The translations under genes and the position numbers were made by a program. The notes below the pieces were generated by a model. The model had not been told where the DNA came from and ran no database searches. It saw only the letters and a list, made by a program, of their open reading frames with translations. Positions 36,605 to 60,898 of a stretch of DNA of 64,000 nucleotides are shown piece by piece. Position 1 is the first letter of the stretch, and the number at the start of each line of letters is the position of its first letter. Source of the stretch: Haliotis rubra (Eukaryota); the NCBI RefSeq assembly GCF_003918875.1, contig NW_025766558.1, positions 620,001 through 684,000 on the forward strand, written 5' to 3'.

Positions 36605-39600
36605 ATGACTACAATGATGTCTTGGTTCAGTACCTTGAACATGGTGCTGCTCATGGATCTGACTGATGGTAAGTATCACCACCTTCTTCTCTCACAGACA
36701 TTGTCGGCGGACCATGGATCTGACCTACTTCTCTCACAGACATTGTCGGCGGACCATGGATCTGACTGATGGTAAGTATCACCACCTTCTTCTCTCACAG
36801 ACATTGTCGGCGGACCATGGATCTGACTGATGGTAAGTATCACCACCTACTTCTCTCACAGACATTGTCGGCACACCATGGATCTGACAGATGGTAAGTA
36901 TCACCACCTTCTTCTCTAACAGACATTGTCGGCAGACCATGGATCTGACTGATGGTAAGTATCACCACCTACTTCTCTCACAGACAATGTCGGCACACCA
37001 TGGATCTGACAGATGGTAAGTGTCACCACCTTCTTCTCTCACAGACATTGTCGGCGGACCATGGATCTGACTGATGGTAAGTATCACCACCTACTTCTCT
37101 CACAGACATTGTCGGCACACCATGGATCTGACTGATGGTAAGTATCACCACCTACTTCTCTCACAGACATTGTCGGCGGACCATGGTTCTGACTGATGGT
37201 AAGTATCACCACCTACTTCTCTCACAGACATTGTCGGCAGACCATGGATCTGACTGATGGTAAGTATCACCACCTACTTCTCTCACAGACATTGTCGGCA
37301 CACCATGGATCTGACTGATGGTAAGTATCACCACCTACTTCTCTCACAGACATTGTCGGCGGACCATGGATCTGACTGATGGTAGTATCACCACCTACTT
37401 CTCTCACAGACATTGTCGGCGGACCATGGATCTGACTGATGGTAAGTATCACCACCTACTTCTCTCACAGACATTGTCGGCGGCTCATCTATGACATGTT
37501 AGACATGAAACTAACCTTAAATGTGATCGTAAGGCTGTGGTTAGAGGCATGTCATTCCATCTGTGGGTCACAGTAGACACAGATTCACGAAACACGAAGC
37601 AGGACATTATTAACCTCTTGCTTCCGAGTGCTGGACACAGTGTTGATTGGAGGCAAGGAACGCGGGATTGGGATCATTAAANNNNNNNNNNNNNNNNNNN
37701 NNNNNNNNNNNNNNNNNNNNNNNNNNNNNNNNNNNNNNNNNNNNNNNNNNNNNNNNNNNNNNNNNNNNNNNNNNNNNNNNNNNNNNNNNNNNNNNNNNNN
37801 NNNNNNNNNNNNNNNNNNNNNNNNNNNNNNNNNNNNNNNNNNNNNNNNNNNNNNNNNNNNNNNNNNNNNNNNNNNNNNNNNNNNNNNNNNCCTCTTCAGA
37901 CTCCAATGCTTATAAGCTTATAAGAGGCGACTAACAGGACCGGTTGGTCAGATTCGCTGACATGGTTGACACATGCAATCGTATCCGAATTGCGTTGATC
38001 GATGTTCATGCTGTTGATCACTGGGCTATCACGATTATTTACAGACCGCAGTCAAATAGCTTGATCATTCCTGAGAGCGGCGTTAAACAACTAACAAATC
38101 CAATCTGTTTGCTGACCTAGTTTTGTCCTGTCAGTTGCAGCTGGTGTCATCCTACAGACGGAGAAGATGGTCGTGCAGGGCGTTGCGTCCTACATGAGAG
38201 CGTCGTGCGACTGTCCCGCGACACACATAGTGCTGGTTCGGCCTGACACCAAGACAGTAGTTTTTGTAGCACAACAGTCGACTGCCAGAGTAATTGTGAA
38301 GGTTATTTGAGTGACCCGCTGTTTAGTAATGAAACAACTCTGAGTGTTGTCATTGTCAAGTTTCAAGCTGTTGATGTGGGAACATGGAAGCTGCGATGTT
38401 GTGGCAAAGAAGTGATGTCAACAATAACAGATGGAGCAGGTGAGAAGACATGTGTGAGTGGGAGGGGTGGGGAGTGATGTCAACAATAACAGATTGAGCA
38501 GGTGAGAAGACGGTGGAGTGGGAGGGGAGGGGTGGGGAGTGATGTCAACAATAACAGATGGAACAGGTGAGAAGACGTGTGTGAGTGGGAGAGGAGGGGT
38601 AGGGAGTGATGTCAACAATAACAGATGGAGCAGGTGAGAAGACATGTGTGAGTGGGAGGGAGGGGTGGGCAGTGATGTCAACAATAACAGATGGAACAGG
38701 TGAGAAGACACGTGTGAGTGGGAGGGAGGGGTGGGGAGTGATGTCAACAATAACAGATGGAACAGGTGAGACGACATGTGTGAGTGGGAGGGGAGGGATG
38801 GGGAGTGATGTCAACAATAACAGATGGAACAGGTGAGAAGACATGTGTGAGTGGGAGGGAGGGGTGGGGGGTGGGAGTGATGTCAACAATAACAGATGGA
38901 ACAGGTGAGAAGACATGTGTGAGTGGGAGGGAGGGGTGGGGGTGAAATGATGTCAACAATAACAGATGGAACAGGTGAGAAGACATGTGTGAGTGGGAGG
39001 GAGGGTGGGGGTGAAATGATGTCAACAATAACAGATGGAACAGGTGAGAAGACACGTGTGAGTGGGAGGGGAGGGGTGGGGGTGAAGTGATGTCAACAAT
39101 AACAGATGGAACAGGTGAGAAGACATGTGTGAGTGGTAGGGGAGGGGTGGGCAGTGATGTCAACAATAACAGATGGAACAGGTGAGAAGACATGTGTGAG
39201 TGGGAGGGGAGGGATGGGGGGTGAAGTGATACTGAGTTGACATCGGTTTAGTAGGGATGACATTGGTTGTGTTGCGTTCAGTTGAAATGAGTGGGAATGA
39301 GATAAATGATATCGGTTGTGTGAGTGAGTGAGTGACTAGTGACCTTTGTAATATGCAGCATCATTCTTCATATTTTCAGAAACTATATCAAGACGTCCAA
39401 CCATCCTGCGCGACCCCGTACCGCCAACAGAACATCTCGGGGGGCGAGCAGATGGGGCCGCACGATCACACACGACAAATCGACTGTTCGCAAAAGCTAC
39501 ACGTTTCCCCACCACCGACAGGACACCTCGGAGGACAGGTTCTGTCCCTCATCCAGCATCCAGCACTGGAAATACACTTCCCAATTCTAACATCGTCCTC

Positions 39601-39657
39601 AACATGTCACTGATAATGACATCCATCTTTTTACTGATGTTTGTAAATGTTTTTTAA
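36605..39657 (+). CDS. Putative GPI-anchored Ig-like cell-surface protein; exons 36605-36668, 38135-38439, 39380-39657
   Basis: Exon 1 MTTMMSWFSTLNMVLLMDLTD (signal-like, G|gtaagt, phase 1). Exon 2 is phase 1-1, Cys-rich, with LSVVIVKFQAVDVGTWKLRC (Ig E/F-strand-like); it needs one extra T in the T5 run at 38261-38265. Exon 3 is a P/T/S/R-rich stalk ending SSTGN..IVLNMSLIMTSIFLLMFVNVF*. The gap in intron 1 could hide further exons. Confidence 0.7.
36652..37483 (+). repeat. 61 bp minisatellite spanning the exon 1 end and 5' splice site of the Ig-like gene
   Basis: Unit catggatctgactgatg|gtaagtatcaccacctacttctctcacag|acattgtcggcggac, about 13 copies. Confidence 0.93.
37682..37890. other. Assembly gap (209 N)
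   Basis: N run. Confidence 1.
37915..38100 (+). mobile_element. 3' portion of a SINE-like repeat (related copy on the minus strand at about 52640-52835)
   Basis: Shared ggcgactaac...gatcactgg...gcggcgttaaacaa type sequence. Confidence 0.5.
38412..39230 (+). repeat. About 58-66 bp G-rich minisatellite spanning the exon 2 end and 5' splice site of the Ig-like gene
   Basis: Unit gtgatgtcaacaataacagatggaacag|gtgagaagacatgtgtgagtgggagggaggggtgggga, about 13 copies. Confidence 0.93.
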
Positions 39658-40242
39658 TCTTGACCCAATCAATACATAGTTGCACAGTGTATATGGTCTC
39701 TGCTCTGAAGCATGAGCGTGTCGGCCAGTGCAGCAGCCGAGAGATGACCTAATGGGACTAGTGAATGGACACACAAACAGCTGTTTCCAGGGACACTCAA
39801 GGTACCCGGATGTAAACTATTGACCTTTGTCACGCTCACGAGCCAGATCCTGAGTATTCACTCACCAATTTCACCAAGTGCTTTACGTCAGAGACATGCA
39901 GCACTTCCGGCTTTCCTGCCACAGCCGGCAGCCATGACATACAGGAATACAGAGAGTTGGTAAAAAAAAACCCAACTCACTCACGTAATTTTATGAGGAA
40001 ATTAACAGTAATTGACGTGGTTCTATTCTTGTCTTTATTATCACCCGTTGTTTGCCACAAAAAGCTGTATTGTTAAAATTCTTTCTAAATTTGGAAATAT
40101 AACAGCAATGAAAAGTTTTGTGTAGGTTTTGAGAGTATAAAAAGACAGCATAACAGCAGGTTATAATGTCCATGACATTGACGTTAAGAGTCCAGGTTCG
40201 GGGCAGGGGTCAACCACCAATGCCACCGATGTCACCAGCTCA

Positions 40243-41150
40243 GTGACGTGTATGCCTACCCCGAGCACAGCAGTCCATCGCCGACGCATGGAGTCTATCA
40301 AATAGGCTGGAAGGCAAGTGGAATGGCTTCCCAAATTCTCTGTAAATCTGTGGCTAAATCAGGAACGTTATCCGGCGGAACACGGCGTAGATGTCGCTCT
40401 ATTTCCTCCCACGCATGCTCTGTAGGGATCCGGTGAATCTGCAGGCCAAGGCAGTTTTGTTATATTGTGCTGTGGAAGAAAGCCCCATCAACCTATAGCC
40501 GCTTGTGGGCATGGAGTGGTAATCGTGGTCCAGGGCGGTGAAGAAACGGAATTGTTCTCTTCAGCCCACACCTGTCAAATTGCCCCGAGCAACATCTAAA
40601 GATTTTCTCCAACGTGCACTTATCCCACCCCCCAGTCATCACGGAACCATCCCAATTCCTCTCCAAGACACAGGCTTGAATACAAAGCTTCCCAAGACGT
40701 CTGTAGACACGTTGACCTCCTTCACTATGGAAAATGTTTAATTGTCTGTGAAAAGTCCTCCACCATAACCGAAATTGACAGGATTTCGGCACCACCTTTC
40801 ACGGCTTTCACGATGACATTGCGTCAGGATAGGTCGTATGGCGGGACGAGTCATGTCCCATAATGAAGCAAGCGGTTCCTGACTGTGTTGGAGTTGATAC
40901 GCCGAAGTCTTGGAATGGCCTGAACAGTGGTGCCTGCAGTCTGAGACCAGTGTCGGAGATGGGGCACCCGCATCTATCTGTCCTGTCTCGGCGTTGTGAC
41001 ACGTAGACGTCCTGCACGTGGGCGATCTGCAATTTCATTATTGTTCTGACAACGTCTCAACTGTGCTGAAATGGTGTTTCGCTGGCAGTGGAAATCTCGG
41101 CCATCTGACGTGAGATTTCCTCACCGTACCATCCCCTTAGCCTCATGACG
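40243..41150 (-). mobile_element. Decayed Tc1/mariner (Tc1-family) transposase pseudogene
   Basis: Minus-strand fragments DRPRAGRLRVTTPRQDR*, TVRNRL, RPILTQCHR..R.RWCR, GGQRVYRR, GSVM, LPWPADSPD / EHAWEEIERHLR, SMRRRWTAV; stops and frameshifts present. Confidence 0.85.
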
Positions 41151-41534
41151 TCATGATGTCGATGTCAAACAATTAAGCTTCCAAACTGTGAGCAGCTTCT
41201 GACAAATGTGTGCTCTCAGTGTATCGAGATGCACATGCACAAATGTGTTTGCACGTGCCAATGCCGGACCACCAACATCACGAAATGTAGCCCATGCATG
41301 CGTGTTCAATTGAATTCACTAATTTCTGTGTTTACATTTGTATATATGTACACTTGTTGTTCAAATATATATTATTTTGATTTCATCGGTGCACAGTATC
41401 GTTTCGTAGTTAGTATGTGGCAAGTATGCAAAAATGGAATCAGTGGAAAGTATTACTTTAATTTCTAATCAGTGTGGGCACACAGGATAACAAACTTTGC
41501 CTTACGAAATACAACGCACATAGGTTTGAACTGA

Positions 41535-41574
<40 letters not shown>

Positions 41575-41719
41575 GGGTATATAAGTCAAATACGTGTAAG
41601 GAGTAATGTCTGTAGCGGTGTGCAGGTCGCTCTGACTGCCTGTAACATGGGCCCAGGAAACATGGAGAGGAGGCGCAGTGTCGGGGACCTCTCCAAGGAG
41701 TCACTAGACGTTCGCCGGT

Positions 41720-41803
41720 CTACTGGGCGTCTACACTGAATCTGTAGACGGTTGTCTGTCTATAAGTCTCGCCGGGTCTGAGGATGGTGCTTGGGAAACT
41801 GGG
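41720..41803 (-). CDS. GALM: GALM-A exon 7 ([27 protein letters not shown])
   Basis: gtttcag acceptor, TAG stop. Confidence 0.92.
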   Translation of the reverse strand, partial: PSFPSTILRPGETYRQTTVYRFSVDAQ

Positions 41804-44800
41804 CTGAAACAATGGAGAAAGGATGACTCACTCTGTCTTGTATGGAATACTGTAAGGGACATTCTCGCGATCTCGCATTCTCGCTCTTTTGGTATTTTAA
41901 GCTTGATTCCAAAGGACGAGATCGCGAGAATGCGAGATCGCGAGAATGTCCCTTACAGTATTCCATAGTCTTGGCAATGAGTATTGTGATATTGCTAGCT
42001 GTGACTGTAATATGTACATTATAGACACTGCTGTCAAGCCCGTGTGTTGGGGCCACGTCAACCACAACACTGTTTTCAACCCGGATTGTTTCCGCCATAA
42101 TTCCACACAAATGTGTGTGTGTGCGTGCGTGCGTGCTTGCGTGCTTGCGTGGAAGCTGGGGGAATGGGCTGTCTGTTCAAGGCAGGATGCGCCATCAGCT
42201 AGGTATTTAGTGGCGTTTGTGTTTGTCATGTCTGCGGTTGTGTTTGTCATGTCTGCGGTTGTGTTTGTCATGTCTGCGGTTGTGTTTGTCATGACTGTGG
42301 TGTTGGTTGTCAAGGCAGTGGTTGTGTTTGTCAAGTCAGTGGTTGTATTGTAATGACTGTGGTTGTGTCTGTCATGACTGTGGTTGTATTTGTCAATGCA
42401 GTGTCAGGGCAGTGGTTGTGTTTGTCAAGGCAGTTGTTGTATTTGTCAAGGCAGTGGTTGTGTTTGTCATGACCGTGGTTGTATTTGTCATGACTCTGGT
42501 TGTATTTGCCATGACTGTGGTGTTGGTTGTCAAGGCAATGGTTCTATTGTCATGACTGTGGTTGTGTTTGCCATGACTGTGGTTGTGTTTGTCAAGGCAG
42601 TGGTTGTGTTTGTCATGGCGGTGGGGACTGGAGATCAGTTGAGGTTGTTTAGTTGGGTGACCATGGGTTCTACATTTATATTCAGTAAATATAAATACTC
42701 AATACACATCTCACATATCATGTTCGGTTTGCCCTGTCGGGATGCCGATACCATAACAAGGTATACATGACTCGAGGACGTCATTGCTTCTGAGCCGAGT
42801 CTACGACAAATAGATGGGACGTATGTCCAAAGAAGGTGTGGCGTGGGCATTTTACGTCCGTTTCAGTTGTTATATTATTTAGGCAACAAATGCACTTAAA
42901 GTATTTGATTACATCCATCCCATTGTTGGCAGTGTTGGCATTCTTTCACCTGATTCACACTGTCTGGGTGATGCTGGGCTTCGAGACAGTTGTGTTAACT
43001 CACGTGATTCACACTGTCTGGGTGATGCTGGGCTTCAAGACAGTTGTGTTAACTCACCTGATTCACACTGTCTGGGTGATGCTGGGCTTCAAGACAGTTG
43101 TGTTAACTCACGTGATTCACACTGTCTGGGTGATGCTGGGCTTCAAGACAGTTGTGTTAACTCACCTGATTCACACTGTCTGGGTGATGCTGGGCTTCAA
43201 GACAGTTGAGTTAACTCACGTGATTCACACTTGTCTGGGTGATGCTGGGCTTCAAGACAGTTGAGTTAACTCACCTGATTCACACTGTCTGGGTGATGCT
43301 GGGCTTCCAGACACTTGTGTTAACTCACGTGATGTACACTTGTCTTGGTGATGCTGGGCTTTAGACAGTTGTGTTAACTCACCCGATTCACACTGTCTGG
43401 GTGATGCTGGGCTTCAAGACAGTTGAGTTAACTCACGTGATGTACACTTGTCTGGGTGATGCTTGGGCTTCAAGACACTGTCTTGAGCTTTAACTCACCT
43501 GGTGTCACACTTGTCTGGGTGATGCTGGGCTTCAAGACAGCTGTGTTAACTCACCTGGTTCACACTGTCTGGGTGATGCTGGGCTTCAAGACAGTTGAGT
43601 TAACTCACGTGATGTACACTTGTCTGGGTGATGCTGGGCTTCAAGACAGTTGAGTTAACTCACGTGATGTACACTTGTCTGGGTGATGCTGGGCTTCAAG
43701 ACAGTTGAGTTAACTCACGTGATGTACACTTGTCTGGGTGATGCTGGGCTTCAAGACAGTTGAGTTAACTCACGTGATGTACACCTGTCTGGGTGATGCT
43801 GGGCTTCAAGACAGTTGAGTTAACTCACCTGATTCACACTGTCTGGGTGATGCTGGGCTTCAAGACAGTTGAGTTAACTCACCTGATTCACACTGTCTGG
43901 GTGATGCTGGGCTTCAAGACAGCCGAGTTTACTCACGTTATGTACACTTGTCTGGGTGATGCTGGGCTTCAAGACAGTTGAGTTAACTCACGTGATGTAC
44001 ACTTGTCTGGGTGATGCTGGGCTTCAAGACAGCTGTGTTAACTCACCTGGTTCACACTGTCTGGGTGATGCTGGGCTTCAAGACAGTTGAGTTAACTCAC
44101 GTGATGTACACTTGTCTGGGTGATGCTGGGCTTCAAGACAGTTGAGTTAACTCACCTGATTCACACTGTCTGGGTGATGCTGGGCTTTAGGACAGTTGTG
44201 TTAACTCACCTGATTCACACTGTCTGGGTGATGCTGGGCTTCAAGACAGCCGAGTTTACTCACGTTATGTACACTTGTCTGGGTGATGCTGGGCTTCAAG
44301 ACAGTTGAGTTAACTCACCTGATTCACACTGTCTGGGTGATGCTGGGCTTCAAGACAGCCGAGTTTACTCACGTTATGTACACTTGTCTGGGTGATGCTG
44401 GGCTTCAAGACAGTTGAGTTAACTCACGTGATGTACACTTGTCTTGGGTGATGCTGGGCTTCAAGACAGTTGAGTTAACTCACGTGATGTACACTTGTCT
44501 GGGTGATGCTGGGCTTCAAGACAGTTGAGTTAACTCACGTGATGTACACTTGTCTTGGTGATGCTGGGCTTCAAGACAGTTGAGTTAACTCACGTGATGT
44601 ACACTTGTCTGGGTGATGCTGGGCTTCAAGACAGTTGAGTTAACTCACGTGATGTACACTTGTCTGGGTGATGCTGGGCTTTCAAGACAGTTGTGTTAAC
44701 TCACCTGGTTCACACTGTCTGGGTGATGCTGGGCTTCAAGACAGCCGAGTTAACTCACGTGATGTACACTTGTCTGGGTGATGCTGGGCTTCAAGACAGT

Positions 44801-47800
44801 TGAGTTAACTCACGTGATGTACACTTGTCTGGGTGATGCTGGGCTTCAAGACAGCCGAGTTAACTCACGTGATGTACACTTGTCTGGGTGATGCTGGGCT
44901 TCAAGACAGCCGAGTTAACTCACGTGATGTACACTTGTCTGGGTGATGCTGGGCTTCAAGACAGTTGTGTTAACTCACCTGATTCACACTGTCTGGGTGA
45001 TGCTGGGCTTCAAGACAGTTGAGTTAACTCACGTGATGTACACTTGTCTGGGTGATGCTGGGCTTTAAGACAGTTGTGTTAACTCACCTGATTCACACTG
45101 TCTGGGTGATGCTGGGCTTCAAGACAGCCGAGTTAACTCACGTGATGTACACTTGTCTGGGTGATGCTGGGCTTCAAGACAGCCGAGTTAACTCACGTGA
45201 TGTACACTTGTCTGGGTGATGCTGGGCTTCAAGACAGTTGTGTTAACTCACCTGGTTCACACTGTCTGGGTGATGCTGGGCTACAAGACAGTTGTGTTAA
45301 CTCACCTGATTCACACTGTCTGGGTGATGCTGGGCTTCAAGACAGCCGAGTTAACTCACGTGATGTACACTTGTCTGGGTGATGCTGGGCTTCAAGACAG
45401 TTGTGTTAACTCACCTGGTTCACACTGTCTGGGTGATGCTGGGCTACAAGACAGTTGTGTTAACTCACCTGATTCACACTGTCTGGGTGATGCTGGGCTT
45501 CAAGACAGTTGTGTTAACTCACCTGATTCACACTGTCTGGGTGATGCTGGGCTTCAAGACAGCCGAGTTTACTCACGTGATTCACACTTGTCTGGGTGAT
45601 GCTGGGCTTCAAGACAGTTGTGTTAACTCACCTGATTCACACTGTCTGGGTGATGCTGGGCTTCAAGACAGTTGAGTTAACTCACGTGATGTACACTTGT
45701 CTGGGTGATGCTGGGCTTTAAGACAGTTGTGTTAACTCACCTGATTCACACTGTCTGGGTGATGCTGGGCTTCAAGACAGTTGAGTTAACTCACGTGATG
45801 TACACTCGTCTGGGTGATGCTGGGCTTCAAGACAGTTGAGTTAACTCACGTGGTGTACACCTGTCTGGGTGATGCTGGGCTTTAAGACAGTTGTGTTAAC
45901 TCACCTGATTCACACTGTCTGGGTGATGCTGGGCTTCAAGACAGCCGAGTTTACTCACCTGATGTACACTTGTCTGGGTGATGCTGGGCTTCAAGACAGT
46001 TGAGTTAACTCACGTGATTCACACTTGTCTGGGTGATGCTGGGCTTCAAGACAGTTGTGTTAACTCACCTGATTCACACTGTCTGGGTGATGCTGGGCTT
46101 CAAGACAGTTGTGTTAACTCTCCTGGTTCACACTGTCTGGGTGATGCTGGGCTTCAAGACAGTTGTGTTAACTCACCTGGTTTACACTGTCTGGGTGATG
46201 CTGGGCTTCAAGACAGAACCCTGTAAACTTCCCATAAGTGGCGCCATCTTTTCCCTTGTCCTTGGCGTCGAGGTAGTAGCTGGTGTAGAATAAGACCGAT
46301 GGTTCGGTTGTGGATACTTCCAGGACCCGCCCTGATGGAGGGTGCTCCATTCTGTAAACGAGAAGAAACAAATAAAACAGGATTCTTACCGACCGCTCTA
46401 TTTTGTCCTATATTCCTTTCCATTCATACAGTACAGACAGTATTAAAACGACCTAGTTCCCAAAACAGATTGAAGATGTTGATTTATCCACTTATTTGTA
46501 TCTTTAGATCCCCACAGGCCACTGCATAGGCGTGCAGGAATATCTTCTCCAGCTACGTGCCCCAGGTCACGCCAACCGTACAAAATGACGGTCTGAGGTA
46601 CAGATACATGTCACGCCCACCGTACAAACTGACGGTCTAAGGTACAGACCCACGTCACGCCTACCGTACAAAATGACGGTTTTGGAACAGATATGCCACG
46701 CCCACCTTGCTACATGTTTCAGGTTCCCCGACTCCTCCAGGTTATAGCTGACAGTATATCCTGTTCCACCCGGAACTGACGTCATATGATCTCCCAGCCG
46801 TACAGGACTCCGCAGGTCGTAAGGGGTTTCATCAACATCTTTTAGCTCACCTGAAATGTAAACAGTAATAATCCCAACAGCACCTATCCTGATTATAGCC
46901 TTTATAATAATGTAGGGAAAGTCTCATTCGCTGTCTGATCTGCGTATTGAGGGGGCACAGGACTTGATGATACATCTAACCAGCTTGACTGTGCCAGGAT
47001 CACCCCAAGCCTCATGGTTGCATTTAACTATATTATTCTGTAAAAGAAAATTGCAAATTAAATGTGGGCATGTATTGAGAGTACACAATACTGGGGCACA
47101 GTGACAATTTGCAAACATTCAACTCATAGGAATAATTGCTCGTCACGGCTTCCACAGCTGTCAACAAGGGAGGGAGGCATGCAATCTTGTTTTATGCCGC
47201 TGTATTGTAATTCAAACAACGCGCAAATAATGTGACCCACACAAAATCAACAAGGTCACCTTACCTGTAGGTATGAGAGTGTCGTCGAGGACGGCGTATG
47301 CATCAGAGTTAATTCTGACAACGTGGTCGTCAATGTGGCCGGCAGACTGACGAACAGAGAGATATTTTGTGTTAGATCAGCGATATATGCATGGATGGGC
47401 AGGGGGCGCATTATCTTTTGTTAAAGTATTATCTGTTACAAAGTGTTATCTATATATCGCTGACAGATAAGAACATTTCACATCCCAACACCTAACCACG
47501 TTGGTAAGTTTGTCCACTAGCTGCCACGTTTAAAACTCGAGAATAGTCTCGATCTAACTAATGGCCCATGTACACGCTCTATAAACAAGCCCAATAACAC
47601 TTCCAATTGCATGCCTGATTCAGACATGCCCTATACACACCCCTGCACACATGCCCTGTAGACACACCCTATACTCATGCTCTTTATGCATGCCTTAAAC
47701 ACGTGTCCTCTGCAGACGCTGTACACATGCCCTGTAGCCACACCCTATACTCATGCTCTTTATGCATGCCTTAAACACGTGTCCTCTGCAGACGCTGTAC

Positions 47801-50800
47801 ACACGCCCTGTAGCCACACCCTATACTCATGCTCTTTATGCATGCCTTAAACACGTGTCCTCGGCAGACGCTGTACACATGCCCTGTAGCCACACCCTAT
47901 ACTCATGTTCTTTATGCATGCCTTAAACGCCTGTCCTCCGCAGACGCTGTACACATGCCCTCTACATACACACTGTCTGGATAGCCAGAACACACGCCCT
48001 ATGCTCATACCCTATCCTCACCAATAAACACATACCCTGCAGTCACGCCCTTCACACATGTTCTATACTAGTGCACTATAAACACGCCCAGTATACGTGC
48101 CCTACACACGCCCTGTACATGCCCCACATACAGGCACACATTCAGGAGTTTGTACCGATACTGCCTGCTGCGCTGCTGCTGTCGAGGCCTCTTAGGGGGG
48201 CTTCTATATTACAGGGTAAAACAAAGCTGAAGCATCACCCGACCAGGTGTATTAAAGTCTATGGAGGTTATAATGAAAACCAAATGTCAGACCACTGTTT
48301 CATTGCCCTTGTATAAATGTATACCGTGTTCTAAATTAAGCTCACTTGAAATATTCAAAATATTCAACTGCTTGGATGAGGATATGTTTGATCGCTCACA
48401 TGTCCGGCCATGTTGAAGTAGGCGTGGTTTGTCAGGTTGATGGGCGTGGCTTTCGTGGTGTTAGCCTCGTACTGAATGAACAGTTGATTGTCATCTGTCA
48501 GCTCGTACGTCACAGTTGTCGTCACCTCACCCGGGAAGCCCTCCTCGCCATCGTCGCTGACGTATCTCAGCTGAAGCTTCTTGCCGTCCACAACATTGGT
48601 GTTCCAGACGACTTGGTCAAAGCCTTTCACGCCGCCATGTAATAGATGCTCCCCGTGATTGGCTGTAAGGTTGTACGTTTCCCCGTCCAATGAGAATTTA
48701 GCTCCCTTAATACGGTTAGCATACCGTCCAATGATAGAGCCAAGGCAGAATATTGCGTTGCTTTCGTAACCTGCAATATGAACATATGATCGAGTCTTTA
48801 CCTACTGTCTAACCACATGCAGTGTTATCTCTGTGACTGTATTAGCGCCTTCATAAAACAGTGAACGGTTTTCATTCCACGTCACACTAAATCTGATATT
48901 CGATGTTTTATGGATTAATCCCATTTAAGCTGATGTCACCCCGTCTGCGGTGAGGCGATATGCCAAATCACACAGATACAGCCTGTATGTCAGACATGGG
49001 TTAAACTGAAGGTGGTCGATTACGCCGGTGTGTGACCGAATCAAGGTAAGGTTGGTCCGGCAACATCACACTACCAACTACCATCTCGTCTCACAACCAA
49101 CCTGTCATATCGTCGAAGCCGAGACTGATGTCGTCAACGTCGCCGTGTTTATCTGGCACAAGGATGTCAGTGATGGTGGCGCCGTAGTTCAAGACGCGGA
49201 CAAGGACATTATTGCCATTCGTAAGGGTGTATCTGGCGGAGAAACAGAATTACAAAATTTGTGTTGACATGTAGTTTTAAAATCATGTCTTCTGGTCGTT
49301 TTAGCTTTACGAAAATATTTTGAAGCCGGGGGCACCTGGACTAACCCCCAAATGTCTGTGTCTGCCACTTGGTGCATGATTTCGTCTGGCAGCTTATATA
49401 ACGTTTTCTCTGAACTTGTAAATATAATCAACTTTCTGGAACTATGAGAACTCGTATTTAGTTACTCAATCACTGTCCTCATTACATGACTGGATCACAG
49501 CCTGTAGGCCAAGGTCCCGAGATGACCTAGATGGCCTGTGTCTTGTTACAGGTCATGAGAACAGCAAGATAACCCAGCTCCTGACCAATCTCGTTACAGA
49601 CCTGAGTGAGACACGTTTAGACGACCAGTACAATCAGAGTGAACTAGGGGCAACCTGACGATCAATTCAATCACAGGGAACTAGGGGCAACCAGACGACC
49701 AGCACAATCAGGGGAATTAGGGGCAACCAGACGACCAGTACAATCAGTGGGAACTAGGGGCAACCTGACGACCAGTACAATCACAGGGAACTAGGGGCAA
49801 CCAGACGACCAGGGCAACCAGACGACCACACAATCAGGGGGAACTAGGGCAACCTAGACGACCAGTACAATCAGGGGAACTAGGGGCAACCTGACGACCA
49901 GTACAATCAGGGGAACTAGGGGCAACCAGACGACCAGTACAATCTAGTGGCAACCAGACGACCAGTACAATTAGGGGAACTAGGGGCAACCAGACGACCA
50001 GGGGAACTAGGGGGGCAACCAGACGACCAGTACAATCATCAGGGGAACCTGGGGCAACCAGACGACCAGCACAATCAATTGGGGAACTAGGGGCAACCTG
50101 ACGACCAGTACAATCAGTAGGGGAACTAGGGGCAACCAGACGACCAGTACAATCAGTGGGGAACTAGGGCAACCAGACGACCAGTACAATCAGTGGGGAA
50201 CTAGGGGCAACCAGACGACCAGTACAATCAGGGGGAACTAGGGGCAACCAGACGACCAGTACAATCAGGGGGAACTAGGGGCAACCAGACGACCAGTACA
50301 ATCAGGGGGAACTAGGGGCAACCAGACGACCAGCACAATCAGGGGGAACTAGGGGCAACCAGACGACCAGTACAATCAGGGGGAACTAGGGCAACCTGAC
50401 GACCAGTACAATCAGGGGAACTAGGGGCAACCAGACGACCAGCACAATCAGTGGGGAACTAGGGGCAACCAGACGACCAGTACAATCAGGGGGAACTAGG
50501 GGCAACCAGACGACCAGTACAATCAGTGGGGAACTAGGGGCAACCAGACGACCAGTACAATCAGGGGGAACTAGACGACCAGGGCAACCAGGGGACGACC
50601 AGACGCACAGTACAATCAGGGGAACTAGGGGCAACCAGACGACCAGTACAATCAGTGGGGAACTAGGGGCAACCAGCCTGGGGACGGCCAGACGACCAGC
50701 ACAATCAGGGGAACTAGGGGCAACCAGACGACCAGTACAATCAGGGGAACTAGGGGCAACCAGACGACCAGTACAATCAGTGGGGAACTAGGGCAACCTG

Positions 50801-51408
50801 GACCAGACCAGACGACCAGTACAATCAGGGACCACTAGGGCAACCTGACGACCAGTACAATCAGGGGGAACTAGGGGCAAACCAGACGACCAGTACAATC
50901 AGGGGGAACTAGGGGCAACCTGACGACCAGTACAATCAGGGGAACTAGGGGCAACCAGACGACCAGCACAATCAGGGGAACTAGGGGCAACCAGACGACC
51001 AGCACAATCAGTGGGGACTAGGGGCAACCTGACGACCAGTACAACCAGGGGGAACTAGAGGCAACCAGACCATCAGTACAACAAGGGTAAAAAAACAAAA
51101 CAAACACAAGCACGCTCGCACGCACGCGCACACACACATGCACGTCACACAGACGTACACCTACAAGGAGCCTCTGGTGTTTCATGAGAGTATCGCATCC
51201 TATGCTATGTCTTATCACTGTAAAGTTCACCTGTCAAACGCACGCCTTCACTGACGGCGAGGCTGCCCTGTGGTGCCAAGCTGTGAGGCTTTTCTAAACA
51301 AGAAATGGTCAGTATGGTGCCACAGCCGTGACAGAGTGGGTTTATCTACCTGCTGACATGTTCTCCGGTCTTCGTCACCCCGAACTCCTCCTCTGTGATA
51401 GAAGCCAT
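41720..51408 (-). CDS. GALM: Galactose mutarotase / aldose 1-epimerase-like, copy A, 348 aa; exons 51408-51350, 49232-49102, 48770-48400, 47346-47265, 46850-46706, 46351-46177, 41803-41720
   Basis: All GT-AG with consistent phases, 1047 nt. Motifs [60 protein letters not shown]. Confidence 0.93.
41841..41967. mobile_element. 127 bp MITE with 44 bp perfect TIRs (TATGG...CCATA) and 6 bp TSD gtcttg; IS3EU-like
   Basis: TIR tatggaatactgtaagggacattctcgcgatctcgcattctcgc and its exact reverse complement; gtcttg on both sides. Confidence 0.8.
42220..42620. repeat. 21 bp degenerate minisatellite (gtcatgactgtggttgtgttt)
   Basis: Tandem units. Confidence 0.85.
42946..46216 (-). repeat. 54-55 bp minisatellite made of the GALM-A exon 6 end plus donor, about 60 copies
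   Basis: Minus-strand unit TGTCTTGAAGCCCAGCATCACCCAGACAGTGTGAATCAG|gtgagttaacacaac. Confidence 0.96.
46177..46351 (-). CDS. GALM: GALM-A exon 6 ([17 protein letters not shown]...[14 protein letters not shown])
   Basis: Contains the catalytic Glu motif; CAG|gtgagt donor. Confidence 0.92.
46706..46850 (-). CDS. GALM: GALM-A exon 5 ([13 protein letters not shown]...GYTVSYNL...HVA)
   Basis: Canonical splice sites, phases 1-2. Confidence 0.9.
47265..47346 (-). CDS. GALM: GALM-A exon 4 ([27 protein letters not shown])
   Basis: Canonical splice sites, phases 0-1. Confidence 0.9.
47640..47960. repeat. About 76 bp tandem repeat, 4 copies
   Basis: cacaccctatactcatgctctttatgcatgccttaaacacgtgtcc... 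repeated. Confidence 0.8.
48400..48770 (-). CDS. GALM: GALM-A exon 3 (GRYANRI ... HGG ... [11 protein letters not shown])
   Basis: Conserved motifs, canonical splice sites. Confidence 0.95.
49102..49232 (-). CDS. GALM: GALM-A exon 2 ([43 protein letters not shown])
   Basis: ccgccag acceptor, G|gttggt donor. Confidence 0.92.
49620..51080. repeat. 36-38 bp minisatellite (agtacaatcagggggaactaggggcaaccagacgacc) in GALM-A intron 1
   Basis: Tandem units. Confidence 0.93.
51350..51408 (-). CDS. GALM: GALM-A exon 1 ([19 protein letters not shown])
   Basis: ATG at 51408, AG|gtagat donor, phase 2. Confidence 0.88.
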
Positions 51409-51858
51409 TGTTTGTCCTCAGCCTGTTATCTACTGCAAGGCACTTAGTAATTACCTCCCTTGTCCATGTCACGCTACATTCACTGCAAGCTTTATTTGAA
51501 TGTTGCTGTAGATTCCACATGTTGGTAGATCTTCCTGGGAGACAGATGACTCTCGATGTTCGGTACACACTGTCTTCACCGGTAGTCCCGATACAATCAA
51601 TACAAACATGCGATGAATGTCGTCGTCGCTGTCGGTCACGCTCCAGACGTCTATATGGACATGCACGCACGCACGCACACAGACACGCACCACACACACA
51701 AACTAACACTAACGCACACACACACACACACACATACACACACTAACACACACATCAACGCAGGCTGACAGAGTATATTGTTTCTGCAGAAGTCATTACC
51801 TTCATTGTATATACTGTAACACCCTGTCAACCATTACCTGTACTTGTCCTTGTGTCCC

Positions 51859-52428
51859 AGTGTCACCGTGGTGTAAGGAGGACCTCCCAGCCTGTACCAG
51901 TGTCACCGTGGTGTAAGGAGGACCTCCCAGCCGCTATCTACTCAGTCCCCGTCCAATACCCTCCCAGCCTGTACAAGTGTCACCGTGGTGTAAGGAGGAC
52001 CTCCCAGCCGCTATCTACTCAGTCCCCATCCCTCCCAGCCTGTACCAGTGTCACCGTGGTGTAAGGAGGACCTCCCAGCCGCTATCTACTCAGTCCCCAT
52101 CCCTCCCAGCCTGTACCAGTGTCACCGTGGTGTAAGGAGGACCTCCCAGCCGCTATCTACTCAGTCCCCATCCAATACCCTCCCAACCTGTACAAGTGTC
52201 ACCGTGGTGTAAGGAGGACCTCCCAGCCTGTACAAGTGTCACCGTTGTGTAAGGAGGACCTCCCAGCCGCTATCTACTCAGTCCCCGTCCAATACCCTCC
52301 CAGCCTGTACCAGTGTCACCGTGGTGTAAGGAGGACCTCCCAGCCTGTACAAGTGTCACCGTTGTGTAAGGAGGACCTCCCAGCCGCTATCTACTCAGTC
52401 CCCGTCCAATACCCTCCCAGCCTGTACC
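51859..52428. repeat. Composite about 40/77 bp tandem repeat upstream of GALM-A
   Basis: gtgtcaccgtggtgtaaggaggacctcccagcc repeated with an optional insert. Confidence 0.88.
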
Positions 52429-53224
52429 ATAACACAGCTAGTGTGTTGTGTGCGTGTCTTCCCAGAAACGTTCTGAAACTGTATACACTTGTAATCTGTC
52501 GTCCTTGGTGTTTGTGCACTGGCGACAGTGTGTAGGAAGATACACCAGAGGCTCGAACTCAACTCAAGTCTGTGTGAGAAAGGGTCTCCGTTCACCTTTG
52601 AGCTTGTGGCGACGGAGCAGCTTATCGTACAGTATCGAATGAATGAATGAAAATAATATCGAATAATCGAGTCTGGACCAGACAATCCAGTGACTGATAT
52701 CACGAGCATCAATCTACACAATTGATAAACGTCGACATACATTAGCCAAGTAAGCGAGCTGACCCTGCTAGTCATGAAACATCCGCTAGTCGCCTCTTAC
52801 TGCAAGTATGAGTTGCAGACGACCTGTTCTAACCTGCTGATTTAACGACATTACGCTCTTACTTTATGTCTGACTGAACTATTACAGGTCTATGTTCCCT
52901 GGATTCAATATCCCGAGTTTTATTTTGGGTATTCCGCTCCAGTTAGAGCATTATATGCTCCTACTTACAACTCCACAGGTACATCACATTCATCCACCAC
53001 TGTCCACAACCCACTGATGGGGTCAACACGACGTCTCTCACCCAGCCAACGTATAGATTACATAAGCCGGGGGAATGGTATATATTTATTCATAGATATG
53101 CACAGTAAACGTCAACCCCTTGATTAAGGTAGGATTCAAGGTCAAGGTAATGCAAGAAATGTGCATGCCATGTCTCTGCTGACTAACGGTGTCTACTCTA
53201 CATCTGTAGACGGTGCATGTCCGT

Positions 53225-56200
53225 CTACTGTGCGTCTACACTGAATCTGTAGACGGTTGTCTGTCTGTAGGTCTCGCCGGGTCGGAGGATGGTGCTTGGG
53301 AAACTGGGCTGAAAGAACGAAACAACTGAATCATCCTAAGTGTTCGAAATAGAAGTAGAAATGTCAGAACAGACCAGAACAATCCAAAGAAAACTGACGA
53401 CCTGCAAAGAAGCGAGACTTGTTCAGCGTGAAACTGGTTCCAGCATCAGTAACGATGTACGGGGCTAGCAGATGGTGTGATGTACACTTGTCTGGGTCAT
53501 GCTGGGCTTCAGGACAGTTGAGTTAACTTACCTGACGTACACCTGTCTGGGTGATGCTGGGCTTCAAGACAGTTGAGTTAACTTACCTGATGTACACTTG
53601 TCTGGGTGATGCTGGGCTTCAAGACAGTTGAGTTAACTCACGTGATGTACACCTGTCTGGGTGATGCTGGGCTTCAAGACAGTTGAGTTAACTTACCTGA
53701 CGTACACCTGTCTGGGTGATGCTGGGCTTCAAAACAGTTGTGTTAACTCACCTGATGTACACTTGTCTGGGTGATGCTGGGCTTTAAGACAGTTGAGTTA
53801 ACTCACGTGATGTACACTTGTCTGGGTGATGCTGGGCTTCAAGACAGCCGAGTTAACTCACCTGATTCACACTGTCTGGGTGGTCCTGGGCTTCAAAACA
53901 GTTGAGTTAACTCACGTGATGTACACTTGTCTGGGTGATGCTGGGCTTCAAGACAGTTGTGTTAACTCACCTGGTTCACACTGTCTGGGTGATGCTGGGC
54001 TTCAAGACAGTTGAGTTAACTCACCTGATTTACACCTGTCTGGGTGGATGCAGTTGGGCTTAACTCACCTGATGTACACAGTTGAGTTAACTCACGTGAT
54101 GTACACTTGTCTGGGTGATGCTGGGCTTCAAGACAGCCGAGTTAACTCACTTGTCTGGGTTCACACTTGTCTGGGTGATGCTGGGCTTCAAGACAGTTGA
54201 GTTAACTCACGTGATGTACACTTGTCTGGGTGATGCTGGGCTTCACACTGTCTGGGTGATGTCTGGGTGATGGGCTTCAAGACAGTTGAGTTAACTCACT
54301 GTCTGGATGCTACAGTTGAGTTAACTGTCTGTCTGGGTGATGCTGGGCTTCAAGACAGTTGAGTTAACTCACGTGATGTACACACTTGTCTGGGTGATGC
54401 TGGGCTTCAACTGACAGGTGATGTTAACAGTTGAGTTAACCTGGGCTTCAAGACGGTTGATTACTCACTTGTCTGGGTCATGCTGGGCTTGCTGAGTTAA
54501 CTCACGGGATGTACACTTGTCTGGGTGATGCTGGGCTTCAAGACAGTTGAGTTAACTCACGTGATGTACACTTGTCTGGGTGATGCTGGGCTTCAAGACA
54601 GTTGAGTTAACTCACCTGATTCACACACGGGGTGATGCTGGGCTTCAAAACAGTTGTCTGGGGTGATGCTGGGCTTCAAGACAGTTGTGTTAACTCACGT
54701 GATTCACACTGTCTGGGTGATGCTGGGCTTCAAGACAGTTGAGTTAACTCACCTGATTCACACTGTCTGGGTGATGCTGGGCTTCAAGACAGTTGAGTTA
54801 ACTCACGTGATTCACTGTCTGGGTGATGCTGGGCTTCAAGACAGTTGTGTTAACTCACCTGATTCACACTGTCTGGGTGATGCTGGGCTTCAAGACAGTT
54901 GAGTTAACTCACGTGATTCACACTGTCTGGGTGATGCTGGGCTTCCAGACAGTTGTGTTAACTCACCTGATTCACACTGTCTGGGTGATGCTGGGCTTCA
55001 AGACAGTTGAGTTAACTCACCTGATTCACACTGTCTGGGTGATGCTGGGCTTCCAGACAGTTGTGTTAACTCACCTGATTCACACTGTCTGGGTGATGCT
55101 GGGCTTCCAGACAGTTGTGTTAACTCACCTGATTCACACTGTCTGGGTAATGCTGGTTAGACAGTTGAGTTAACTCACCTGATTCACACTGTCTGGGTGA
55201 TGCTGGGCTTCAAGACAGTTGAGTTAACTCACCTGATTCACACTGTCTGGGTGATGCTGGGCTTCAAGACAGTTGAGTTAACTCACCTGATTCACACTGT
55301 CTGGGTGATGCTGGGCTTCAAGACAGTTGAGTTAACTCACCTGATTCACACTGTCTGGGTGATGCTGGGCTTCCAGACAGTTGAGTTAACTAACTCACCT
55401 GATTCACACTGTCTGGGTGATGCTGGGCTTCCAGACAGTTGAGTTAACTCACCTGATTCACACTGTCTGGGTGATGCTGGGCTTCCAGACAGTTGAGTTA
55501 ACTCACCTGATTCACACTGTCTTGGTGATGCTGGGCTTCCAGACAGTTGAGTTAACTCACCTGATTCACACTGTCTGGGTGATGCTGGGCTTCCAGACAG
55601 TTGAGTTAACTCACCTGATTCACACTGTCTGGGTGATGCTGGGCTTCAAGACAAAATGCTCCAAATTTCGCGTAGGTGACACCACCTTTGCCCTTTACAT
55701 CGAGATAGTAGCTTGTGTAGAACATCACGGAGGGTTCTGTTGTTGACATTTCAAGTACACGTCCTGATGGCGGGTGCTCCACTCTGTTAAACGAGAAGCA
55801 GCAGGTCAAGCATAGTTGGACGCAGCTACGGCGTTACGACCTCAACCTCATCAACATCATCAACCTCATCAACATCAGCTGACACACCGACAAGTCCTCG
55901 GGTTCCTGAGGCTCGGCTGTTTGTTTCGACTGGTTCATACTCCTTACTTACAACCTCCATGGATACAGCTACAGTATCACTGACATACAACACTCATTCA
56001 CTCATCACGGGGCAATATGTACAGGAATCTGTATACACAGGGGTGTGCAGTCCCAAACTCTTACCCTATGACATGACCTAGAAACAATCCTGTCTTCATT
56101 TTACCATTTACCATTCTATTACACAAGAAGCACGCGTCCATCAATATAAGAGGTTGTGTAGATGACCCAGTATCAGGGGAACAGACATGCCACGCCCACC

Positions 56201-59200
56201 TTGCTACATGTTTCAGGTTCCCCGACTCCTTCAGGTTATAGCTGACAGTATAACCTTTCCCGCCCGGAACTGACGTCATGTGATCTCCCAGCCGTATCGG
56301 GCTGCGCAGGTCGAGAGGAGTTCCAGTAACATCTCTTAGTTCACCTTCAAGAAGCGGAAACCTATCAGACAATTACACATGTTGATTCAAAACCAGCAAC
56401 ACCAACCTTGTAATACAAACCAATAATAGCGATATGAATCTGTGATCGTTTGTTAAACGTTTATCCTAAGTTTAATAAAATTCTGAGATTTATATGTTCA
56501 CCTGACAAGGCAAGATTATTAGGATTCGCAATCTTAATTTCACTTTTGTTTACTTTATTGTTTAAAGTGAAATTCATCGGTACGTTTTCACTGCAAACAG
56601 ACTATAGCTACCATACAGTAATCACATGTTGGCAACCACGCCCTGCAGATCAGCTGGGTTGTTGTTACTTCATCACTGTTACATCAACTGATCCCAGTAG
56701 TCACCTCACCTGTAGGTATGAAGGCGTCGTCAAGGACGGCGTATGCATCAGAGTTGATACTGACCACGTGGTCGTCAATGTGGCCTGCAGACTGACGGGA
56801 AAAGGGAGGTAAGTTTACTTTTGTTTTCCATCAGTGATTACCCCAAGGCAGGGAGGGTTGTGTGGTGGGTGTGGAATACCGTGGATACCGCATGGGTTGG
56901 TAGTTGTATCAATATCAATATTTAGTAAATGCCTGTTCACTTCTGTTATTCGCTATTATTTTATATATAAAAGAAATTGGTAAAATGAACTTGATTTCTT
57001 TTCCATTTTTGAATATCAGTGGCCTTTTACAATGACTACTCTTCGACTGTGGAGACTGGGTATTTAGTGACGGGACTGCAGCACGGGAAATCTTACATGT
57101 CCGGCCATGTTGAAGTAGGCGTGGTTTGTCAGGTTGATGGGCGTGGCTTTCGTGGTGTTAGCCTCGTACTGAATGAACAGTTGATTGTCATCTGTCAGCT
57201 CGTACGTCACAGTTGTCGTCACCTCACCCGGGAAACCCTCCTCGCCATCGTCGCTGACGTATCTCAGTTGAAGCTTCTTGCCGTCCACAACATTGGCATT
57301 CCAGACGACTTGGCTGAAGCCCTTTTCGCCGCCGTGTATGAAGTTGGACCCGTGATTGGCTGCCAGGTTATAAGTGTTACCATCCAATGAGAATTTAGCT
57401 CCTGCTATACGATTAGCCACTCGTCCAATGACAGTGCCGATGTAGGGTTTGTTGTCTTGGTAACCTGGTGATGGGAATAGGACATCCTATCATTATCTAG
57501 GAACAGAGAATACAATAAGAATAAGAAGAAGAGTGGATAACGTTGCACTTGTTGTTTTCTGGTGTTCATAGCGTGTTTGTATTCGTTATACTATGATTGA
57601 ATTATTGGTTTTACAGAGCGATAGCAAGTCGTTTGGACAATACACAACATGCAAAACAGCCTGGAAATATTTAAGATTGGACCAGAAGAAAACGGTGAAT
57701 GATATTATGAGTACTTCATCTGGTAAAATGGGATGCTAGCAACCAAGCCGCCAAATCTAACCACCAGACATATCTATGACAAGTACAGGTTGTTGGTAAG
57801 AAGTTGTAACTTGGAATCCACACTGGGCGACTTAGTAACACTTATCTCCAGTGACATCTTCTGTACTTTACAACAGCTGTGCTATTTATTTTAAAACTGC
57901 AACACCTGTTTTGGTCATGCGTCATATAAGCTTCGGTCCAGTGTTGACAGATTGAGAAGGTCTTATCCACCGCCATAGTGTGGGTGGACAGGGTGTTCCG
58001 GGGCACGTGTCACAACCCACCCGACCAAGGTCCTGATTCCTGGCATATTCCAATATGGAAATATCTATATGAATCGCAAGTGTGTAAAGCGCATGCGCAC
58101 AACTCGTTATTACTTTCATTCAGTACAATATATGACATTACTATGGAAAACATTTCAGTTCCTACTAGACACGTGTATGTATTCTGAGGTGTATGTCCCT
58201 CTTTCGCACCAGATACCAGATTTGCTGATGTTACAGTGAGTGAGTGAGTGAGTACGGTTTACGCCGCTTTCAGCAATATTCCAGCAATATCACGGAGAGG
58301 GACACCAGAAATGGACTTCACACATTGTACCCATGGGGAATCGAACCCAGGTCTCGGCGTGACGAGCGGACGCTTTAACCACGAGGCTACCCCAGCGGCC
58401 CGCTGATCTTACAGACTTTATTGCGGACAACTTCCACGATCTGGACAAAGACATGGTTATCGTTGGATGCATAAAAAATGTATCCAATGCGGTTTAATCG
58501 TGAAACAGGATAGTGTACGTTCGTTGCTAATAGTGTTGGACCCGGATGGCGTTGAATTTCGCTCAAGACACCGTCTTCATCGACGTGTTTATTCTTCAAC
58601 TTCCTGTGTTGTTAAAACATGTTAAATAAACTACAACACACATACGTATACATAAGGGATTGAAACGGAGGAAGTAAAACGGGGAACATGGTATTTTAGT
58701 AAGAAATAAAGTCGGTACATGTGCTATACGTGCACATACTAATGGATCAAATAAATAAGGCGGCTTTTATATGATATTGTACAGAATTAAACTCAATACA
58801 TCAGACATCAGTTTTATAATTAAGTATAACACTCAACGTTTACATTTTTCATGGTCATGTAATACTATATATTCATAATAAAGCCGTAGCACAAAACAAG
58901 GTATCCAAGCTTTATGCTAGTGTTCATAATACGTTGTACCAATATTAGAAGTCATCATAAACACCTATAGTTAACTCCGACTTTGCATCGTTTGAAATCT
59001 TCCAAAAAGGATAGAAGTTTGTACATTTTAGCCATCAGTCAAGCAAACGTGCGTTCCATTAATGCCATTAAATGCTAAACACGAAGTTGAGCGCTCAAGA
59101 TACTAACTTGTGCGCTCAAGATATTAACTTGTGCGCACAAGATACTAACTTGTGCGCTCAAGATATTAACTTGTGCGCTCAACATACTAACTTGTGCGCT

Positions 59201-60898
59201 CAAGATGTTAACTTGTGCGCTCAACATACTAATCAGGTCCCTTCATTCAACATATTTAATCTGTTGCGTAAAATCCGTATTCTGGCCACGGGGTATCTTG
59301 GTCGGAGTCTCCCGGGTTCTACATAAAGTAAAAGGGATTACCTTTCAGTGTTGAGTAGCAGGGGTTAGAGCTTCTTGATAGGGCAAATCGCGTACCTTAG
59401 TTGTGCTGAATGTAATGTGGGGTTATAATCCTCATATAGGGAACACTCAATATAGTCTTAACTATCCGAGAAATAGTCGTGTATAGAGATAGTCGTGTAT
59501 AGAGATAGTCGTGTATAGAGATAGTCGTGTATAGAGATAGTCGTGTATAGAGATAGTCGTGTATAGAGATACTCGTGTATAGAGATAGTCGTGTATAGAG
59601 ATAGTCGTGTATAGAGATACTCGTGTATAGAGATAGTCGTGTATAGAGATAGTCGTGTATAGAGATAGTCGTGCATAGAGATAGTCGTGTATAGAGATAC
59701 TCGTGTATAGAGATACTCGTGTATAGGGATAGTATAGAGATACTCGTGTATAGAGATACTCGTGTATAGAGATACTCGTGTATAGAGATAGTCGTGTATA
59801 GAGATAGTCGTGTATAGAGATACTCGTGCATAGAGATACTCGTGTATAGGGATAGTATAGAGATACTCGTGTATAGAGATAGTCGTGTATAGAGATACTC
59901 GTGTATAGAGATACTCGTGTATAGGGATAGTATAGAGATACTCGTGTATAGAGATACTCGTGTATAGAGATAGTCGTGTATAGAGATAGTCGTGCATAGA
60001 GATAGTCGTGCATAGAGATAGTCGTGTATAGAGATACTCGTGTATAGAGATAGTCGTATATAGAGATAGTCGTGCATAGAGATAGTCGTGCATAGAGATA
60101 GTCGTGCATAGAGATAGTCGTGCATAGAGATAGTCGTGCATAGAGATAGTCGTGCATAGAGATAGTCGTGTATAGAGATAGTCGTGTATAGAGATACTCG
60201 TGTATAGAAATAGTCGTGTATAGAGATACTCGTGTATAGAGATAGTCGTGTATAGAGGTATAGAGATAGTCGTGTATAGAGATACTCGTGTATAGAGATA
60301 GTCGTGTATAGAGATAGTCGTGTATAGAGATAGTCGTGCATAAGTCGTGTATAGAGATAGTCGTGTATAGAGATAGTCGTGTATAGAGATAGTCGTGTAT
60401 AGAGATACTCGTGTACTTTCATTATAGCAGTGGGAGCTGGCGTATGTTCCGTGTCGGCGGACGTCTTCAGGTCAAGGCCAGGGGCAGTATAGATTACGTT
60501 CGCAGCTGAGGTGAAAGGTCACATGTGCCGTCTTCACGGGCAAGGGGCCTTATAGACTAGTGTATTCGAAAATATTCACTCGAGGGAATAAAGTTGGATC
60601 ACGGTTGGATGAATGTCTAACTGACAAACAAAGCAGGCATCCATTGACGTGTATCTCAGCTTTAGTGACAATACATATTAGAAAACTCCACCGAGTGCAT
60701 GCAGCTACGCCAGTATTATGCAATACGTGTTCGATACAAATGTCTGATACTTGTGATATATTGTACCAGCAGGTGTAAATCTTCTGTGTGTACGAACAAG
60801 AAATGTGAGCCACAGCCGTGACAGAGTGGGTTTATCTACCTGCTGACATGTTCTCCGGTCTTCGTCACCCCAAACTCCTCCTCTGTGATAGAAGCCAT
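53225..60898 (-). CDS. GALM: GALM-like copy B; exon 1 60898-60840 (duplicate at 63401-63343), canonical exon 2 not found, exons 57464-57097, 56791-56710, 56344-56200, 55783-55615, 53308-53225
   Basis: Exons 3-7 intact and in phase ([37 protein letters not shown]); no NYGA/LGFDD exon seen between 57465 and 63343. Confidence 0.8.
53477..55653 (-). repeat. 54-55 bp exon-6-end/donor minisatellite of GALM-B, about 40 copies
   Basis: Same unit family as 42946-46216. Confidence 0.95.
58237..58401 (-). mobile_element. tRNA-derived SINE, same family as 23555
   Basis: A/B boxes on the minus strand, (TCAC)n tail, TSD gctgat[g/c]ttacag. Confidence 0.8.
59090..59232. repeat. 21 bp tandem repeat (aacttgtgcgctcaagatact)
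   Basis: About 6-7 units. Confidence 0.85.

Follow-up and report, generated by a model that had tools for sequence, protein, structure and literature searches.

Why should minisatellites begin inside coding exons and carry the exon end, together with its 5′ splice site, over and over into the adjoining intron? The question is raised by a stretch of 64,000 nt from Haliotis rubra (hereafter the window; assembly GCA_003918875.1, part of contig QXJH01000025.1), 41% of which consists of minisatellites. The genomic locus of RefSeq protein XP_046571124.1 in this assembly agrees with the window letter for letter. The window holds two galactose mutarotase genes on the minus strand, GALM-A and GALM-B (Pfam PF01263), and an Ig-like gene at 36.6–39.7 kb. 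We ran Tandem Repeats Finder (TRF) on the window and searched spliced gene models singly by exon, with a full-length protein as query in place of the joined model. The cross-species junction data cover GALM and the Ig-like gene only.

Anatomy of the junction arrays

A first-pass annotation of the window had described arrays built from an exon end plus its donor and running into the intron, and TRF recovered all five at nearly the same positions (Table 1). The units span real exon–intron boundaries, which were placed (i) for GALM-A by exact mapping of the RefSeq protein, (ii) for GALM-B and the second Ig-like donor by orthologs and (iii) for the first Ig-like donor by inference. The exon stretch in the GALM-A unit amounts to 13 codons of exon 6. 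As described, the GALM-A exon-5 donor is also where the small fifth array begins, with an exon content of just 1–5 nt at most; a 44-nt array is present at this site in H. asinina too.

Over the four large arrays, whose units of 54–67 nt are of minisatellite size, the splice signal is retained, and 115 of the 116 copies counted have GT. Donor copies are identical in array 1 (12/12) and in array 2 (12/12). GT is kept in 55 of 56 copies in array 3, where 25 copies match the authentic 9-mer and 29 have C at −1, so that about half of its donors carry the weaker base at this position, and in all 36 copies counted in array 4. Each array 1 unit further contains a moderate acceptor-like site, which would mark out a micro-exon of 32 nt.

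The three independent units are no more alike than shuffled sequences, which agrees with the earlier view that position, rather than membership of a repeat family, is the common factor; no microhomology, skew or motif is common to the array units. Four independent origins were considered and rejected, as the GALM-A and GALM-B arrays share both unit and variants and therefore count as one.

Table 1 Genes, junction arrays and assembly gap in the window
Feature	Position	Strand	Description
Ig-like exon 1	36605–36668	+	Inferred signal-peptide exon; phase-1 donor at 36669, the sole phase-1 donor with an upstream ATG frame before exon 2 outside the gap
Array 1	36652–37483 (TRF 36723–37483)	+	61-nt unit (17 nt exon + 44 nt intron); 12.5 copies; donor 36669
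Assembly gap (N run)	37682–37890		Inside Ig-like intron 1
Ig-like exon 2	38135–38439	+	305 nt (306 in ortholog); one-base frameshift near T run 38261–38265
Array 2	38411–39224	+	~67-nt unit, ~30 nt exon; donor 38440; 12 copies
Ig-like probable last exon	39381–39657	+	Hydrophobic end; boundaries uncertain
GALM-A	41720–51408	−	7 coding exons; exact spliced match to RefSeq protein XP_046571124.1; Pfam PF01263
GALM-A coding exons	51350–51408, 49102–49232, 48400–48770, 47265–47346, 46706–46850, 46177–46351, 41720–41803	−	
Array 3 (GALM-A)	42946–46216	−	54/55-nt unit, 39–40 nt of exon 6; donor 46176; ~60 copies
Small array at GALM-A exon-5 donor	46566–46706	−	44-nt unit; 3.3 copies; almost no exon
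GALM-B exons 3–7	53225–57464	−	Match to XP_046571075.1
Array 4 (GALM-B)	53477–55653 (TRF 53484–55653)	−	54/55-nt unit of array 3, 39 nt exon; donor 55614; ~40 copies

The Ig-like gene has no called protein in the H. rubra assembly, and Pfam returns no Ig match for it; exon 2 is intact in the H. cracherodii and H. rufescens orthologs, which by language-model features (Atlas) are similar to Ig V-set/I-set clusters. The order and strands of CARD, Ig-like gene and GALM-A are identical on one H. rufescens contig, where a signal-peptide exon of the annotated ortholog ends at the same phase-1 donor upstream of exon 2 and intron 1 measures 1,642 nt, compared with 1,466 nt in H. rubra. The assembly gap in this intron is separated from array 1 upstream by 199 nt and from exon 2 downstream by 245 nt, is in contact with no array, and its flanks have no 10-mer in common. 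The end of exon 1 and the start of exon 2 are both phase 1 and thus compatible, which together with the H. rufescens synteny supports continuity across the gap indirectly. DNA likeness of exon 1 to its H. rufescens counterpart is not significant (181/1000 shuffles), and since the exon itself is inferred, donor 36669 is placed with less certainty than the other three. The H. rufescens model has a different 3′ end from our reconstruction.

The frameshift in Ig-like exon 2 is either an assembly slip or the mark of a recent pseudogene; inclusion of the micro-exon as a remedy was rejected, as one 32-nt unit fails to restore the frame. The window shows signs of local assembly errors in this frameshift, in the absence of GALM-B exon 2 from the H. 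rubra assembly, where copies of exon 1 lie at 60.9 kb and 63.4 kb, and in a 2.5-kb near-duplicate at 59.3–63.6 kb.

Age and turnover of the arrays in Haliotis

Comparison with related species, as the first-pass annotation had proposed, finds that three further Haliotis species carry the GALM exon-6 array at this donor. The 54-nt unit with the breakpoints of H. rubra is present in both genes of H. cracherodii and H. rufescens, and H. asinina GALM-A carries a 42-nt deletion derivative of it; copy numbers in A/B are 60/40 in H. rubra, 35/17 in H. cracherodii, 8/27 in H. rufescens and 5/0 in H. asinina. No exon-6 array was found in H. asinina GALM-B or its paralogs C and D, nor in Gigantopelta or Patella. 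Because it recurs with the same breakpoints in three other assemblies, the GALM array is not an assembly artefact. The split between H. iris and H. rufescens is dated to ~40 Ma, and that between H. iris and H. rubra is calibrated as older (PMC13544226); genus-wide sharing on this dated tree makes the array tens of millions of years old. Non-junction arrays within the GALM-A introns are likewise common to several species.

The two Ig-like arrays are absent at the orthologous donors (array 1 checked in H. rufescens) and are younger than the GALM array; H. cracherodii and H. rufescens share the position of the second donor but have no echo there. In a distant GALM cluster, the homologous last donor is occupied by an array with a 33-nt unit in H. 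rubra (in four copies of the gene region), H. cracherodii and H. asinina. Either an array arose at this junction a second time, or an ancient one has been remodelled.

The arrays change in length and evolve in concert between species, with 0–60 copies and lineage-specific homogenisation. The authentic exon end plus donor shows no difference from the consensus of its own array in H. rubra B, H. cracherodii A and H. rufescens A, and two bases in H. rubra A, compared with at least four differences from arrays of the other lineage. Arrays A and B of H. rubra have variant units in common, although most intron sequence between the two genes is unalignable, and variant units are interspersed within arrays. 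Identity between the two H. rubra genes is patchy as well, with 97/136 in exon 6 outside the echo, 37/39 within it and 169/170 at the end of exon 3. Taken together, these patterns indicate gene conversion both between the GALM paralogs and between exon and array.

The decoy GT dinucleotides are neither purged nor specially retained. Copies in H. cracherodii B and H. rufescens B have drifted and contain a stop within the echoed codons. Reading on from a downstream donor meets an immediate stop in H. rubra, the only species with an in-frame stop after the donor, and an open frame in H. cracherodii A and H. rufescens A. This species-varying outcome fits neutral turnover and not a conserved switch. 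Selection for a 'guard' stop behind the GALM donor was rejected, since two orthologs lack it. General selection for in-frame units was discarded as well, as three of about eight junction units are multiples of three, the share that chance would give. The lengths of the GALM junction units (54, 42 and 33 nt) are each divisible by three, a possible sign of selection on frame.

Exon edges, donors and splicing

We assessed the excess at junctions against a simple null in which arrays are collapsed to one unit, which gives each junction a 2.75% probability of falling inside a unit. Three of eight independent donors lie in arrays against 0.22 expected (P ~0.002, post hoc), a value that is an upper bound on the evidence because the window was picked for the pattern. 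The claim that donors are struck above chance thus stands for the window within this limit, and so does the observation that none of its coding-exon acceptors is echoed. A 35-nt array at 1388–2022 is an unproven candidate over the acceptor of a minus-strand untranslated exon and also reads as a plus-strand donor.

The further claim, that a process acts specifically at 5′ splice sites, is not borne out. Donor-to-acceptor ratios of 3:0 (p 0.25) and 4:0 (p 0.125) are not significant, a GALM paralog of H. asinina repeats its exon-2 acceptor nine times in a 53-nt unit that includes 36 nt of exon, and amphioxus arrays occur at both boundaries (PMC3087553). Moreover, the final codons of GALM genes, stop codon included, are themselves echoed in H. 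cracherodii and H. rufescens, in 2.5–7 copies of 43–44 nt. The proposed link to U1 or R-loops, a mechanism that every coding-junction array of the window would favour by sitting at a donor, is very improbable on this evidence: the stop-codon echoes speak against a U1-linked process because there is no splice site at that edge, and an R-loop-like G-rich sense strand is lacking in all but array 2 (sense-strand G skew of −0.17, +0.69, −0.14 and −0.13 in arrays 1–4).

The dozens of downstream donors appear to leave annotated splicing untouched. The RefSeq protein XP_046571124.1 splices GALM-A at the first donor (46176), and RefSeq models of ten Haliotis GALM genes use the first donor, with one exception, which is indirect evidence of donor choice; a 394-aa H. 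rubra GALM model extends into its own array. By analogy with the 37-bp VNTR in intron 7 of human F7, the extra donors would most likely be ignored. There, as in abalone, the first unit spans the exon–intron boundary and identical pseudo-donors follow; the pseudo-donors are functional without competing, donor choice runs 5′ to 3′ and the most upstream donor alone is used (PMC1557585). The human case differs in being a single locus with few copies, and its scanning rule was established in mammalian cells.

The arrays could nevertheless act as a regulatory device, as the first-pass annotation had allowed, in which copy number would govern the use of downstream donors, or of the 32-nt micro-exons of array 1, and truncated or decayed mRNA would tune expression. 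To belong with the splicing-regulatory tandem repeats (spl-TR, PMC10078293), an array would have to show an association of repeat length with splicing level. Retention of the GALM intron 6 array for tens of millions of years, the in-frame unit lengths and the hit on a homologous donor in two GALM clusters are in keeping with such a role. We regard it as improbable, since (i) the array has been lost in H. asinina B and is missing from the paralogs and outgroups named above, (ii) the reading outcome varies by species between stop, open frame and frameshift, (iii) non-junction arrays in GALM-A introns are equally shared between species and (iv) the F7 pseudo-sites do not compete (PMC1557585).

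Origin and meaning of the arrays

The abalone arrays are a further set of an already known kind, the 'mirage' minisatellites of amphioxus, described in Adh3, the globins BflGb6 and BflGb9, TnC and PGBD5 (PMC3087553, PMC3902484). In both, copies of a boundary run in tandem into the intron, splice signals are kept in many copies, copy number varies, concerted evolution goes along with divergent edge units and both boundary types are struck; amphioxus units measure 10–160 nt, a range that takes in those of abalone. Amphioxus mirages leave splicing intact (PMC3087553, PMC3902484), as established there by RT-PCR and indicated in abalone by gene models alone. Abalone differs in being a mollusc rather than a cephalochordate and in reaching up to 60 copies, and it adds persistence across a genus and the tracking of a coding exon end. 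Variable internal tandem repeats at exon–intron boundaries are also found in human tandem paralogs, where, unlike the abalone arrays as known from gene models, they create alternative splicing or new introns (PMC2812944). Our literature search, thin on subscription journals, found no account of the abalone arrays.

We think it probable that the arrays are tolerated by-products of this kind, kept alive by a copy anchored in the exon. A short tandem duplication would arise across an exon edge in a minisatellite-rich genome. The first copy would hold the true junction, and later donors would stay silent and leave the mRNA unchanged, as has been shown for human F7. Array size would then change by unequal exchange and conversion, including exchange with the exon end and with the paralog array, a step indicated by the species comparison. 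The copy in the conserved exon could not be lost and would keep re-templating the array, so that junction arrays would be long-lived and exceed chance at donor, acceptor and stop-codon edges alike. Tolerance alone fails to account for the excess over chance. The 33-nt array at the last GALM donor of the distant cluster was counted against the tolerance view, as were the GALM unit lengths divisible by three.

Anchoring would be our preferred reason for the excess, and biased birth at exon edges its main rival. Here breaks coupled to transcription or splicing, nucleosome edges or the compositional step at an exon boundary would raise the rate of short tandem duplication at both kinds of exon edge, after which the arrays are neutral. 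The three donors struck against 0.22 expected would follow directly, as would two species-restricted arrays in one small gene, the Ig-like gene. We consider biased birth unlikely, given that the window is post hoc, that no microhomology, skew or motif unites the units and that echoes of the stop codon do not depend on a splice site. Chance overlap or assembly artefact might be expected in a repeat-rich window that was chosen for the pattern, shows local assembly errors and holds Ig-like arrays without an ortholog. It is refuted for GALM by the same array and breakpoints in three other assemblies, and the interspersed variant units and the P value of ~0.002 make it highly improbable in general.

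A more far-reaching reading, which we hold to be rather unlikely, is that abalone exon edges are true hotspots for long-lived minisatellites and that arrays feed the coding exon and its real donor. For tens of millions of years, intronic copies would then have been a source of mutations, or a store of sequence, for the coding exon, and later donors may be used by a minority of transcripts. The exon segment fed in this way would be the one with the presumed catalytic glutamate of GALM.

Junction arrays mislead gene prediction, as the 394-aa H. rubra model illustrates. Abalone offers a test bed with many natural loci that each present dozens of identical donors, in which it can be asked whether the first-donor rule of F7 holds in molluscs. 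With four Haliotis genomes in which array ages are readable, biased birth and longer survival at exon edges would become separable.

Arrays at the last donor and other edges of GALM genes

The second, distant GALM cluster carries, in three species, an in-frame array with a 33-nt unit composed of 27 nt of exon and 6 nt of intron, located at the donor homologous to the exon-6 donor of the GALM genes in the window. In H. cracherodii XP_071079415.1 (L006 17601-17625), the authentic last donor has AT at the GT position. The splice site used in the RefSeq model lies 21 nt downstream, within the array's initial unit, which lengthens the protein by 7 residues. This modelled shift possibly represents rescue by the array, or else an error of assembly or prediction. 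An array also occurs at an acceptor of a GALM paralog in H. asinina. In GALM genes of H. cracherodii and H. rufescens (loci L002 and L003), further arrays repeat the coding end, stop codon included, into the 3′ untranslated region.

Coordinates of GALM arrays and CARD genes in the window and in related Haliotis loci
Feature	Unit (nt)	Copies	Locus	Positions
Last-donor array, second GALM cluster	33		L004 (H. rubra)	4357-4960, 14369-14886, 84957-85621, 95384-95795
Last-donor array, second GALM cluster	33		L006 (H. cracherodii)	7727, 17601
Last-donor array, second GALM cluster	33		L007 (H. asinina)	8302, 13732
Acceptor array, exon 2 of GALM paralog	53	9	L007 (H. asinina)	about 5640-6130
Stop-codon arrays	43-44		L002	3378-3602, 17517-17623
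Stop-codon arrays	43-44		L003	7158-7464, 17745-17851
GALM-A mid-intron arrays	37 and 20-21		Window	49619-51081, 42217-42624
GALM-A mid-intron arrays	37 and 20-21		L001 (H. asinina)	10349-10781, 14405-14542
CARD + coiled-coil genes			Window	12005-12733, 21343-22377, about 29700-30744

Irregularities and splice-like arrays in the window

Exon 2 of the Ig-like gene contains a one-base frameshift at a T run (38261-38265); the frame is intact in its orthologs, and the gene is without a called protein in the H. rubra assembly. Between 57465 and 63614, GALM-B exon 2 is absent and exon 1 is present twice, its copies lying in a duplicate of 96% identity (59274-61111, 61745-63614), possibly through mis-assembly. 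In the left-edge gene, an untranslated exon on the minus strand (1299-1415) may have its acceptor inside a 35-nt array at 1388-2022; the array can also be read as a donor on the plus strand. Another 35-nt array (15172-17271, 59 copies), upstream of the first CARD gene, has donor-like words on the minus strand and was assigned to no exon.

Arrays away from known junctions

Among the near relatives found, those of the three CARD genes are confined to Haliotis. The second and third genes sit within an 8.3-kb tandem duplicate of 98% identity, in which one shared unit is present in 3 copies (20696-20803) versus 36 (27949-29169) and another in 9 (24635-24980) versus 1 (about 32990-33020). Judged from these copy numbers, array turnover here is very fast, and it takes place away from any known junction. 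The GALM-A mid-intron arrays are common to the H. rubra window and H. asinina, and array persistence is therefore not confined to junction arrays.
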